NCBI GenBank assembly: GCA_021613535.1
Contig: CP075493.1
Span: 10,416,001-10,480,000 of the forward strand
DNA from: Adineta vaga
Taxonomy: Eukaryota > Animalia > Rotifera
Length of the DNA: 64,000 nucleotides
Direction of reading: 5' to 3'
Positions 17,728 through 55,124 of the stretch are shown piece after piece. Position 1 is the stretch's first letter, and every line of letters begins with the position of its first letter. Made by a program: the position numbers and the translations under genes. A model generated the notes under the pieces. That model saw nothing but the letters and a program-made list of their open reading frames with translations, had not been told where the DNA came from and made no database searches.

Positions 17728-18364
17728 TTGTGAGTGTTTCTCTTGTTGTTTTTCATCTCGATGAAATATAGACAGAGAGAAAGAAACATTGTGACGGAGC
17801 TTTGTCATGAACAAACACTATAAATCATTTACAGGCGTTACTTTCAAAACAGAATTGATTAAAAATATACTTCTATTTTATTCAGTAGATCTGTTTTGGA
17901 ATATCTTTGATAATCTTTGAAATGAATTCTAAAGATTTTGATGCAAAATGTAGAATGATGTGTATCAAAATCTATGTATTGAATTAACGTGATGGCATAA
18001 ATTGTCAAGAAAATCGATTATTTATAATGGATCGAGCTTTTGATGATGTTCAAAGCAATGAGGAAATAACATGTCAATGTATTTGTTCTATATTCAGAAT
18101 GACAATAAAGCTGTAATAAATTATCTCTAAATTGTTAATCCTTGTTGTTTCTGTACTTTGCTTTTATTCTCAAAGCATATTCATTCATCAAGCAGATGTT
18201 TATCTATTATAAATTTAAAATTTTGTTGATTATTTATTCCATCTATTTATTATTCTTTTGTCTACGATAGATGAAGAATGAATGTCTTGTTTAAAAAAAA
18301 AGGACTTTAGTCTTTGTTTCGGAATTAAATTGGAATGAAAATATCACATGAAAAAGAATATTAA

Positions 18365-18835
18365 TTATTTGCTTTGTTGAGCAAATATGTTCATCGCAGC
18401 GCGAATTTCAGCAGCGTGTTGAGCATCCTGACCTTGGAGACGTAATTCTGCTCGAATTCTTTCTAAAATCAAACCATTCCATTTATTCCAAAATGGTGTT
18501 GAACCTGTAAAATGAATGGAACCATTACCAGAACTTAGAAGAGCATTTCGTAACTCTTCATTTTGTTGAAATTTAGCTAAATTTCCTTTGTACATCTCAT
18601 CAACTTTTACCGATTCCCAGTCATCACGAATGGTAATACGTTGTCCAGCTGTCCAAGCAGAAGTACCTGGTCCTGATTGTAAAACCATATCTCGATCAAC
18701 TTGATTCGTTGTTTTAGCACATTGAAAATAATTTTCTGCTGATGAATATGTTATTCCATCTATAACGAATTTACATGGAAGGAAATTATCTGTTTCCGGA
18801 TGTCTTTTCCCATCAATATCCGCTGGACCACCCAT
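18365..18835 (-). CDS. NADAR (YbiA-like) N-glycosidase / ADP-ribosylhydrolase family protein, intronless
   Basis: NF.PCKFVIDGITYSSAENYFQCAK, RDDWESVKVDEMYKGNLAKFQQNEELRNALLSSG, FW...NGLILERIRAEL match the NADAR pattern. ATG at 18835 directly follows TTTCAG. Confidence 0.9.
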   Translation of the reverse strand: MGGPADIDGKRHPETDNFLPCKFVIDGITYSSAENYFQCAKTTNQVDRDMVLQSGPGTSAWTAGQRITIRDDWESVKVDEMYKGNLAKFQQNEELRNALLSSGNGSIHFTGSTPFWNKWNGLILERIRAELRLQGQDAQHAAEIRAAMNIFAQQSK

Positions 18836-18878
18836 CTGAAACAAGAAACAACATAACAAAACAAAACAAAATTCTTTA

Positions 18879-19607
18879 TCAAAAAAGTCCTATTTGAGTT
18901 TTTTCTTTAAAAAAACGATTACATAAAACTTTCTTTTCACATAACAAATGACAAAGTTCTGATTTCAATTGATTTAAATCAATTAAACGTTGTTGTTTGA
19001 TATTTTGATAATTCCAATCGATTAAAACATATTTTAATCGTTTCATATTCAAACATTTACTATCGAGTATATCATCAACTCGTTTTGGTGTACCAATAAT
19101 AATATTGAATAACGTTGTTGGTTTATTTAGAAATTCAATTTGTTCAGAAAGCTTTTTATGCTTTGCAAATAAATAGTGAAATGTAAATTGTTTTGATGAT
19201 GAAGAATTCTTTAGAAGCTTTCCTAATTCAATACAACGTAATGCTGATTGACCTATAATCAACACAACAGGTGCAGATGATAATTCCGATTGTTTGGACC
19301 ATTTACTAGTTGGAATTAATTCATTAAGATATTCATCCAACGGTAATTTCGATGTTGATGGTGTTGGTGCAGCAATGGAAGAATTGAATATGGAAAGAAG
19401 TTCATCAAGTTCATATTGACTTTTCGATTTTTTGTAATGAATACGAATGATTGACACGAGATCTGAATATGTTCCAATAGCTCGTTTAGGAAGAGGTTTC
19501 TGTTGATTTTTTTTAGTTTTAACTTTTTTCTCAGATGGTTCTTCAGTTTCTATAGGTTCAACTCCTTCTTGAAGATAATAATCATCATCGTTCAAATCAT
19601 CAGCCAT
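18879..19607 (-). CDS. CMSS1: CMS1 ribosomal small subunit homolog (90S pre-ribosome factor)
   Basis: MADDLNDDDYY start, SALRCIEL, LFAKHKKLSEQ, IGTPKRV, VLIDWNYQNIK and a C-terminal GLF. Confidence 0.9.
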   Translation of the reverse strand: MADDLNDDDYYLQEGVEPIETEEPSEKKVKTKKNQQKPLPKRAIGTYSDLVSIIRIHYKKSKSQYELDELLSIFNSSIAAPTPSTSKLPLDEYLNELIPTSKWSKQSELSSAPVVLIIGQSALRCIELGKLLKNSSSSKQFTFHYLFAKHKKLSEQIEFLNKPTTLFNIIIGTPKRVDDILDSKCLNMKRLKYVLIDWNYQNIKQQRLIDLNQLKSELCHLLCEKKVLCNRFFKEKTQIGLF

Positions 19608-20363
19608 CTGGAAGATATGAAATAACAAAATCAAATTAATTCATCATTATTTTCTAATTAAACTTATATTAACATGAAAGAAGAAAAAAGAAGACGAATG
19701 TTTGTTTCAACGAAATTAACAGTATACATAATGAGTAATGACACGAGAGCATGATGATGATATATGCAGAAAAACATGAGGAAAGATCTTTCTAACCTGA
19801 AGAAACCGTAAGAGAAATACACTTTGTAGTTTTTTTCTTATATTCAAGATGATTACATATCTAACTTAATGAATAATCACGAAATATAGTATATATCTGT
19901 AGTAAGACAGATATCTTGTCATTTTTTATTAGACGTACGTCATTTAATAAAATATGGCACATATATTACTCTAATTTTACAGAGATAAAAGAAACTGCGC
20001 AGTTGATTCTCTCGAGTCTGTCAGACGATAAGCGGAACTTGTTTAATCAAGATAGTACTGACCTGAATATTGGTTAATTTTACAAATTTAATTGAAAATA
20101 GCTTCAAATCTGAAATAATAATAAAAATATGGATTAAAATACAAATATCGTGAAGTACCACCACAACTATTCACTAGAAAAGAACATCAACAAAATAATA
20201 CAAGACAATAACAACAATGAATATTTCGATTATAATCGATGTAGAATACATTGACGTAGAATACATGAATAGCACAACAACCACACCAATAAAATAAAAT
20301 AGAAAGTAGAAAAGACAATGAGCAGCGCTATGCGTAAGTAAAATTTTATTTAGAGATTTTTGT

Positions 20364-23300
20364 CTAATCTATGAGCAAATCATTCTCATCACCAGTTCCA
20401 ACAACCATTGGTTGAGAAAGTAGATCATCTGTTCCATTTGCAGTAGGATCACGTATTGAACATCGACGAACTTTTGTCATACTTGGTGGAATATCAAATT
20501 CTTCAATACATGCATTTAAAATTGTTGGAATATAATTCTTTAAAAGAATTGAGAAAAGAATATTTATCATTCATTTCAAATCGAATCCTTACCGATGTAG
20601 CACGTTTTGTATTGTCACGACCTTCCATTGCTTCTAATTCACCTAATTCATCTAGTTTTTGATGATTTCCATCAGACTATATTGAAAGAGAAAACAATTT
20701 CGATTGATCAATATAAAAACATAAAAGAAAAATAGTCCCGTAAGCAAAAACAAAAATAATGTAAAACAAGGTATTGAAAAAACTTCCACAAATAATAACT
20801 GCAAAATTCAATTGATATATTATGCTTCTTACTCTTCGAAATAGATTCCTTAATACTTTATATCGAATAGTAAATGGAAGAAGATAGGTGCTGACCTCTG
20901 GAATAACTGGTGATGATAATGAATATTTTCGTGAACTCCATCGACCGAAGCAATCAAAACATGAAAAACCGAAATAGACACCACCTAAAAAAAACACACA
21001 CACACACACACATGAATGAATACCATTGAACATCAAAAATGAGAACTTACACGTTAAAATGAAGCTGCCTATTAATGTCATGGATAGATATGTTAATGTT
21101 TCTAAAATAGATTCATAAATATTGTTTTCAATTCTTGTCATATTTACTAACCTGAACGAACAAGAACAAAGAAAAGTAATGTTAATTGTTGAATAATTAA
21201 TGCCGTAATAATGAAATTTCCTGCTAAACGATGCACACTTTTATCGGCAATTTCTGTATCATAAACAAATACTAAATTGTATTTATCAACTGCACGTTTG
21301 ATAACAAGATAAATCAAACCTATGAATAAGAAATAGACAATTAAAATTCTCCTGAGAAGAAGAGAACATCGATCTTACCAACGGGTGTTATCAATGGACA
21401 TGCAATAGAATAAGCAACAATCACACAGAAGACAGCAGATGTCCATGCATATTGCACACCGAATCGAAAAGGAAATTGTAATGCCTAAAATATTTCAAGA
21501 ATTCATTGATTATTGATAATGAAAGGAAAAAGAATTTCGGCTTCTTACGTGTCGAATCACACTTCTCTCTGCGGTGGATTTAGCTGTTATAATTATATAG
21601 ATGTAAAAGACAAGATCAGCCAAACGTAACAACTCAATCGTAGTTCCAATAAATGCAGATGTAATTATATAATTGACAAAGAATGCACCATTGTCTGGTA
21701 AAAATACACACCTAAGAATAAATGAGATAGGAAGTTAAATAATGATCTGAACATGATTGATGTGTACACATGTGTCTCATCAAGCGCTGAGCATAACAGT
21801 ACGTTTTATATCAGTCTAATCAGTATCACTTACATCCAGCGAATTCTGCTATTATGTGTAACACCTTCTTCACTTTCGAAAACCCATCGAAGAAAACTTT
21901 CAATACTTGTTAAACCTAATGATGGTAAAATCAATATCATCATTGCTAAGAAAACAAATAATTTAATCATCATAGATTTATCCAAAGCAGATTTTTTCCA
22001 TTGTTTTTCTAATAATGATGTAACGCTAACAAGTGATGGCATTGCAGCAGCAAAGATACGTAATAATAAGACTGGCATAACAGATGTTAAGAAAACAGGA
22101 ACTTGAATTTGTTTTGTCACTCGTTTTAATGGATCGATAGAACGATATTTATTTGCAATTTTATCAATTGTACTCATAACAATCGATGGAGTTGTTAGAA
22201 ATATCATGAAGAATACCAAAATCTAAATTTTCTCGTTCAATAGGCATGAGTCTGAAAGATAAACATACGATATTAACAACGATGATTCGAAACCAATGAC
22301 TGATTTCACTCATTGGAATGTTTTTCCTAGAGAAGAACAAAGAATTAGATTGCAAAACAAAGTTTATTGAAGAAAACTGCTTTACCAAATTATATTTTTA
22401 GGACTTGGAGCAAAACTAACAGTCCATTCGTGTATACCAATTGAATTACTTGTTGCTGATGTCGGTCGACGGTCAGGTATAAAACATGTTGGTCGAAAAT
22501 GTGAGCGTACTCTAAATAAAATGAATATCTGTTAGTGATTTCTAATAGAATATAAAATCCAATATACCGATGTGCTTCTTCTGGTGTTGAAAATGTGATA
22601 AAAGCTAATCCACATTTTTTCTGTCGAACATGTAAATATTCATCTTCTACTTGATCTTTATATGTATTATATAATTTTTCATAATATTCAATAGCATCCA
22701 CCTAGTATAAAGATAAAAATAATTAACGCTTTCATTTGAAATTATCGAAGCAAACCTCTTTTGCACAATACTAGAATAAACAAATGAATATTAAAATTAC
22801 AAAACCAATGTCATCATTTTAACTTACTCCACACATTTGTCCCCATTTATTATTATACACTACAGGTCGTTTTCCACTTTGTTCGAACATCTTTTTACTT
22901 TGTTGCCAAATGCGAAGATTGAGTTCACTGGAAAAAAATAAGACCTAGTATGACGAAATGATAATTTCAACTAAACAAACCGGCGTTTGTAAACATGTTG
23001 TAATTGAGCTATATTATACGCCAAAGTTAAATGAGTAATCTGAAATTTCGGATATGCTTCTCTACGAATAAAGATCAAATATAAGAGAAACTTCGATTGG
23101 TAAAATACAATTTCGACTAACCGAAAATAATCATTGAGTTTATCCTCATCACATGCATCATGAGGTATTCCACGCACCATTAATGTTCGACTTGCCTGAA
23201 AATATATACAAACGGTAATTTCTTACATTACAAAAACTATAGCCGAATACTGATAGGAATATATACATTGATTGTAAACTCGAAAGAAAACGACATGCAA

Positions 23301-52444: not shown

Positions 52445-52855
52445 ATGCATACGAATCTCTTCTTCTCGAGTTTTCTGCTCTTTTTTCTCAGGATGCTTTT
52501 CTTCTTCTTCATCTTTCTTGCTTCCACTACTCCGAATGATGCTATAGAAATCAACAAGTGACTGTCTTCTACAGATATTTTCTATCGATACAATTTCGAA
52601 TGTATATTTGCGTAATGTACTTCTAAGTTCTTCTCATTTTTCTCTCTCTTCTACTTCTTATGCTAGCCAGATATATCTCTTACATAACAAAAGCTTATGC
52701 ATGACATAAACTCATCTATGAATATCTAATTTCGTGCTTTTTTTGTCATTGTCTGTTGTAAAATGAGTGATTTCTTATTGTTGTTTTTTGGAAGAACACA
52801 AAAAAAAACGAATAAATTTGCTAAATACTAATGTTTTGTGTTGTTTTGTTTTCAG

Positions 52856-55124
<2,269 letters not shown>

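Follow-up and report, generated by a model that had tools for sequence, protein, structure and literature searches.

A foreign-type NADAR gene directly behind CMS1 in bdelloid rotifers: a candidate spliced-leader operon junction kept across genera

Among animals, bdelloid rotifers have the most foreign genes, and it has yet to be settled how these come to be expressed. Operons resolved by spliced-leader (SL) trans-splicing are known in nematodes, tunicates, flatworms and chaetognaths. A locus of Adineta vaga brings the two subjects together, as a gene of the NADAR family begins only 43 nt behind the stop codon of CMS1 (CMSS1) on the same strand, and an earlier note made from the letters alone had proposed that a foreign-type gene was captured here into a trans-spliced operon. 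How, then, is this gene expressed, and how did it come to lie there? The window analysed is the whole 64,000-nt stretch of contig CP075493.1 (assembly GCA_021613535.1, positions 10,416,001 to 10,480,000, forward strand), situated on an 18-Mb contig, and the genome searched comprises 100.8 Mb in 6 contigs; the nearest named proteins come from A. steineri, A. ricciae and Rotaria. RNA evidence was taken from Logan contigs of four runs (X1, X2, X5 and X6) from three studies; such contigs prove neither 5' ends nor single molecules, and overlapping transcripts can merge into a two-gene contig.

The two genes and the junction between them comprise the following features, in the direction of transcription:

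18879 to 19607, minus strand: CMS1/CMSS1 coding exon, 242 aa, ATG at 19607, ending in GLF-TGA; PF14617, E 9e-26
18836 to 18878, minus strand: U/G-rich intercistronic spacer, 43 nt
18836 to 18841, minus strand: TTTCAG acceptor abutting the NADAR ATG, a candidate SL trans-splice site, invariant in seven loci
18365 to 18835, minus strand: NADAR coding sequence, 156 aa, no intron; Pfam PF08719
18221 to 18364, minus strand: NADAR 3' UTR, with AATAAA at 18238-18233 and a poly(A) site at about 18221

Read on the minus strand, the junction is ...GGACTTTTT-TGA-TAAAGAATTTTGTTTTGTTTTGTTATGTTGTTTCTTGTTTCAG-ATG-GGTGGT, and the layout described earlier (a TGA, a 43-nt U/G-rich gap, TTTCAG and an ATG) proved exact; the spacer consists of 60% T and 19% G. 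The last codons of CMS1 are GGA CTT TTT, followed by the TGA at 18881-18879 on the minus strand. The match of CMS1 to PF14617 (91.2 bits, cut-off 35) covers profile positions 65-247 of 250 and its C-terminus is therefore complete. CMS1 is single-copy in the genome, has animal orthologues in molluscs, a jellyfish, an annelid and Brachionus, and is presumably a housekeeping gene of ribosome assembly. NADAR scores 52.1 bits against PF08719 (Pfam gathering cut-off 35.1) and matches PDB entry 2B3W (E. coli YbiA) with an E-value of 9e-10; in common with the YbiA family (PF08719), it has a single domain and a length of about 155 aa.

Two open reading frames placed so closely may be taken for exons of one gene encoding a fusion protein, and this is how they are annotated in A. 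ricciae, where the 383-aa model P0286 fuses CMS1 and NADAR and carries both Pfam domains. In A. vaga, the NADAR ATG lies 46 nt past the first base of the CMS1 stop and NADAR is therefore out of frame with CMS1. None of the GT dinucleotides in the spacer and the final 150 nt of CMS1 resembles the donors GTAAG, GTCAG and GTTAG, the reference being seven introns confirmed within the window, which agrees with the earlier statement that the gap holds no consensus donor, and no joint removing the stop is found in the four RNA runs. The GLF ending had been called similar to that of homologues; GLF-stop is present in six of the seven loci read, the seventh (L019) having an altered C-terminus, and the annotations of A. 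steineri and Rotaria give CMS1 and NADAR as two separate genes. The different frames and the absence of a fusion joint from the four runs uphold the earlier judgement that a readthrough fusion is unlikely; a single fusion gene is hardly credible, and the A. ricciae model probably results from the tight junction having misled the annotation, as is typical for operons. A cis-splice from the GTAATC at 18922 was rejected, since the donor is weak and no such joint occurs in the RNA contigs.

The pair and its spacing are kept in other bdelloids. In A. steineri the order is RSN1-like, CMS1 and NADAR with a CMS1-to-NADAR spacer of 47 nt, in Rotaria sp. Silwood2 NADAR follows CMS1 after 44 nt, and four further bdelloid-like contigs (one of them GC-richer, with a CMS1 identity of just 53%) have spacers of 59, 49, 35 and 39 nt, giving a range of 35-59 nt in the six other bdelloid loci. 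TTTCAG followed by ATGGG is present in all seven loci while the rest of the spacers do not align, and six more metagenomic NADAR ORFs read ...FQ-MGGP, which corresponds to TT(T/C)-CAG-ATG. Since TTTCAG-ATG is kept in seven loci in which the spacer diverges, the arrangement is not due to chance. The hexamer GATAAA, to which the earlier note had drawn attention, does overlap the CMS1 stop in A. vaga but is absent from the six other bdelloid spacers and is thus not conserved; nor is any AAUAAA-like hexamer conserved across the seven. The relatives also include a CMS1 without NADAR, as the earlier note had suggested looking for: in the monogonont Brachionus calyciflorus no NADAR stands behind CMS1, and the gene found 1.45 kb past it encodes an immunoglobulin domain on the opposite strand. 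In the locus L019 (positions 1-164), some 14 codons are missing from the CMS1 before NADAR and the loss of 1 nt shifts its stop, the TTTCAG-ATG being intact; this CMS1 may be a decaying copy.

An acceptor of this kind calls for a leader. The published rotifer SL is GGCTTATTACAACTTACCAAGAG (PMC3795323, Table 1). A search of the genome identified 42 copies of the SL exon, each with one mismatch at the first base (T for G), as against none for the reversed control; the exon is followed by a GT donor (GTAAAT in the copy read), and only one SL sequence was found in the genome. The SL machinery assumed by the earlier note is therefore present. All 42 copies start with TGCTTATT, whereas the published leader starts with GGCTTATT, so that its initial G may be untemplated. 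Many of the copies form inverted pairs about 155 nt apart, for example at C1:2551160-2551336.

The four runs represent clean RNA, in which introns are skipped and the depth is zero in the CMS1 intron and past the NADAR poly(A) site. The mRNA of NADAR is present and carries a poly(A) tail: a contig of X2 stops at 18221, 12-17 nt past the AATAAA, and continues with A9 and Illumina adapter letters. In two of the four runs, colinear contigs (1322 nt in X2 and 925 nt in X5) connect CMS1, across the spacer, with the 3' end of NADAR. A single NADAR contig of X1 (544 nt, aligned over its full length) stops at 18837, in the AG that is common to the SL (...GAG) and the genomic acceptor (...CAG), which is the point where a de Bruijn graph forks if SL-joined (...GAG/AUG) and unspliced (...CAG/AUG) forms coexist. 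No splice joint, be it a cis-splice or a spliced fusion, was found in 18836-19000 across the contigs of the four runs. The contigs of these runs yielded no SL letters on NADAR and no CMS1 poly(A) site. A search for the SL 3' end joined to ATGGGNGGNCC gave no match in metagenome contigs, which are mostly DNA and hence uninformative here, and none of 330 proteins had an ORF translated through the SL (..LITTYQE-M). A 23-nt loose end of the X6 NADAR contig, at 18810, was rejected as SL, since similar letters cap the CMS1 contig of X6 internally, and is read as adapter.

The colinear contigs bear on a second explanation, according to which the mature mRNA is bicistronic, CMS1 running to the NADAR poly(A) site and NADAR being translated by reinitiation or leaky scanning, with no trans-splicing. 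That contigs span the spacer in two of the four runs, while introns have zero depth, indicates that spacer RNA is fairly abundant, and the want of a conserved CMS1 poly(A) signal points the same way. However, the TTTCAG that stands invariant at the ATG in all loci has no explanation if there is no splicing, the X1 assembly breaks exactly at the acceptor, NADAR depth exceeds that of CMS1, and the many internal AUGs in CMS1 would defeat leaky scanning. A bicistronic message as the source of NADAR is accordingly considered improbable.

The gene upstream of CMS1 offers a further junction for comparison, with the following features:

20364 to 22000, minus strand: RSN1/CSC1 (TMEM63-like) gene, 3' part, with the stop TAG at 20366-20364 and a 3' UTR to about 20109
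20109 to 20111, minus strand: poly(A) site of the RSN1-like gene; a contig of X2 stops at 20109 and continues with A10, a contig of X1 stops at 20111
20110 to 20115, minus strand: TTTCAG before the CMS1 5' exon, a candidate trans-splice site adjoining the RSN1 poly(A) site
20063 to 20109, minus strand: CMS1 5' UTR mini-exon, 47 nt; X1 and X5 both show the joint of 19607 to 20063, beyond which 42 letters follow
19608 to 20062, minus strand: CMS1 intron, 455 nt, GT..AG, skipped in two runs and with zero depth in four

Six GT..AG introns of the RSN1-like gene are skipped in spliced RNA contigs, and its C-terminal exon matches an A. steineri gene bearing the domains RSN1_TM, PHM7_cyt and RSN1_7TM. 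The acceptor of the CMS1 intron directly precedes the CMS1 ATG. The TTTCAGATTT block and the donor of the CMS1 5' exon, CAG/GTCAGT, are kept in A. steineri, in which the intron is only about 60 nt long as against 455 nt here. X1 and X5 are runs of one study, and in both the CMS1 contigs begin at 20104, 5-7 nt short of the SL fork expected at 20110. The junction between the RSN1-like gene and CMS1 may be a zero-gap operon junction, and the fact that the RSN1-like message ends on the acceptor of the next gene suggests a three-gene unit of the tunicate type.

The main rival to an operon places a promoter of NADAR within the 3' part of the CMS1 exon, the outron being removed by SL trans-splicing at the same acceptor, so that the genes would be independent or form a 'hybrid operon'. 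It draws on the depth of the NADAR contigs, which is 2.5-3.7 times that of CMS1 in X1, X5 and X6 and could reflect a separate, more stable mRNA or, equally, an extra promoter; on the fact that transcripts overlapping within CMS1 would also merge into colinear contigs; and on SL trans-splicing not being confined to operons (PMC7986045). Against it, the pair is linked with a spacer of 35-59 nt across bdelloid genera, the last approximately 100 nt of CMS1 evolve as coding sequence in the linked bdelloid loci, the neighbouring RSN1-like message ends at the next acceptor in the pattern of operons, and no contig of the four runs starts within CMS1 except for ends at SNP forks. An internal promoter feeding the same trans-splice site is thus considered possible but rather unlikely.

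We consider it probable, on balance, that CMS1 and NADAR, probably together with the RSN1/CSC1-like gene, constitute one transcription unit of the SL-operon type. This part of the earlier proposal is consistent with the SL genes, the conservation of acceptor and spacer length, the contigs that cross the spacer, the X1 end at the expected fork, the absence of a cis-splice or fusion joint and the expression of NADAR; it falls short in that the contigs gave neither SL letters on NADAR nor a poly(A) site of CMS1, that GATAAA is not conserved and that a promoter may lie inside CMS1. Three findings that the same note had set against its own reading, namely a transcription start in CMS1 combined with cis-splicing, a spliced fusion mRNA and a silent NADAR, did not appear in the RNA contigs. 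In such an operon, transcription begun upstream would cross CMS1 and the U-rich 43 nt behind it and continue into NADAR, and the 23-nt SL would be joined at the TTTCAG acceptor, between 18836 and 18835, to give a capped monocistronic NADAR mRNA with the AUG right after the leader; SL-joined NADAR reads would carry ...CAACTTACCAAGAG up to 18835. The CMS1 message would end within the spacer or at its end and, by analogy with the junction upstream, its 3' end probably coincides with the acceptor, as it does in operons of tunicates and in those of the SL1 type in C. elegans.

The motif at the junction was also examined across the genome. In the genome, TTTCAGATG outnumbers its reversed control 4.4-fold. 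Of 2422 such sites, 156 (6.4%) have AATAAA at a distance of 20-50 nt upstream, as compared with 41 of 546 (7.5%) in the reversed control, and a genome-wide signal made up of a hexamer, about 39 nt and TTTCAG-ATG is unsupported, as AATAAA is not enriched. The first 60 sites on contig 1 are mostly internal intron acceptors, with about ten resembling gene starts and three having a long ORF close by on the upstream side; introns produce the same pattern as operon junctions, and operons therefore cannot be counted in this way. A second junction in the window, between a Src-type kinase gene and an NDR-type kinase gene (52811-52858, plus strand), consists of AATAAA, 33 nt of U/G-rich sequence, TTTCAG and ATG.

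The origin of NADAR was approached through its relatives, of which an exhaustive search returned 4200, with 294 at E <= 1e-10; most of them are metagenome proteins. Of the 120 best among 184 profile matches, those with a named organism come from bdelloids, from the heterolobosean amoeba Acrasis kona or from a Planctomycetota MAG, and none comes from a non-bdelloid animal. The identity is 50% with Acrasis kona and 34% with the Planctomycetota MAG, the nearest named bacterium among the matches listed. The label 'foreign-type' given to the gene by the earlier note thus holds as far as tested, and it is reasonable to call NADAR foreign-type in the sense of a non-animal type, loss in other animals being also possible. 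The Acrasis kona gene (L025:4001-4594) is nuclear, with an intron and eukaryotic neighbours. A NADAR gene of 50% identity is present on a 76-kb metagenome contig (L022:8001-8471) along with genes for an RNA ligase, a D5-type primase-helicase (DUF5906) and a MACPF protein, and this contig looks like a large DNA virus. Nine of the ten closest non-bdelloid-like representatives looked up belong to clusters of 1-2 sequences.

Within the genome, NADAR has three distant paralogues (29-33% identity) and lies between animal genes on the 18-Mb contig. Judged by its GC3 of 19%, near the 15% of CMS1, and its dN/dS of 0.20-0.36, NADAR is fully adapted to its host. At position 18652, where the reference reads T (ACA, Thr62 of NADAR), the RNA contigs of each of the four runs read C (GCA, Ala), and Ala is also the residue in A. 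steineri and Rotaria; the mismatch probably goes back to variation between strains or alleles, or to an error in the assembly, and not to editing.

NADAR also occurs as stand-alone copies in Rotaria and Didymodactylos. In the phylogenetic tree, all the CMS1-linked NADAR sequences and the stand-alone Rotaria clade form one group (SH-aLRT 95), two stand-alone Didymodactylos sequences fall outside it together with Acrasis, and a constraint of the linked copies to one clade is not rejected (p-AU 0.68). The tree fits a single placement behind CMS1 before the divergence of Adineta and Rotaria, and the grouping of Acrasis with the Didymodactylos copies hints at transfers among micro-eukaryotes. NADAR would then be a non-animal-type gene acquired by bdelloids, with one copy standing behind CMS1 since before the Adineta-Rotaria divergence. 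The operon slot need not have been its first home, as an earlier stand-alone copy could have moved there. The domestication by operon capture put forward in the earlier note is plausible; it is unproven because Rotaria and Didymodactylos have stand-alone copies and no order of events follows from the tree. In its full form, a promoterless non-animal gene gained expression by landing behind CMS1, the U-rich 3' flank of which served as the acceptor tract for trans-splicing, was kept there since before the Adineta-Rotaria split and gave rise to the stand-alone Rotaria copies as later escapes; this sequence of events is offered tentatively, as possible though doubtful.

Compared with known systems, the locus comes near to the operons of the tunicates Ciona intestinalis and Oikopleura dioica and the rare SL1-type operons of C. 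elegans, which have a single SL type and minimal gaps. In these operons the cistrons are separated by very little sequence or none, and the upstream message is polyadenylated at, or immediately beside, the acceptor used for trans-splicing of the following gene (PMC7986045); the RSN1-like message, which ends at 20109-20111 on the TTTCAG in front of the CMS1 exon, and the 43 nt between CMS1 and NADAR are alike, and the phylum differs. The SL2-type operons of C. elegans share with it co-oriented unrelated genes, a U-rich intercistronic element and an acceptor of the TTTCAG type. However, in nematodes the acceptor lies about 100 nt past the poly(A) site, AAUAAA stands upstream and there is a dedicated SL2, in contrast to the one SL, the lack of a conserved hexamer and the 35-59 nt from stop to acceptor in bdelloids. 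In the chaetognath Paraspadella gotoi, a gnathiferan, nearly half of the genes are trans-spliced and 18% are in SL-resolved operons enriched in housekeeping genes (PMC12460157); unlike the present case, several SLs are used, the operons were defined by gaps below 250 bp together with SL reads, and foreign genes were not connected with them (PMC12460157). A paper on Paulinella micropora proposed that SL addition gives transferred genes a cap and a 5' UTR and mentioned rotifers as organisms that have both an SL and many foreign genes (PMC6053224). It contains no rotifer example, whereas here a specific foreign-type gene is kept in a downstream slot across bdelloid genera.

Operons have been stated to be unreported in rotifers (PMC7986045) and are listed for them as 'ND' (PMC2481426), a 2025 paper names rotifers in passing among trans-splicing and operonic lineages and cites no rotifer operon data, and a full-text literature search found no paper describing bdelloid operons. 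The SL operon is itself a known kind of unit, and the phylum is one in which operons appear to be unreported. If the operon reading is true, it warns annotators that fused models such as the CMS1-NADAR model of A. ricciae are artefacts. A foreign-type gene long held in a downstream operon slot would, moreover, represent a testable route to expression in bdelloids, in which the gene would need no promoter and the SL would supply the cap and the 5' UTR.
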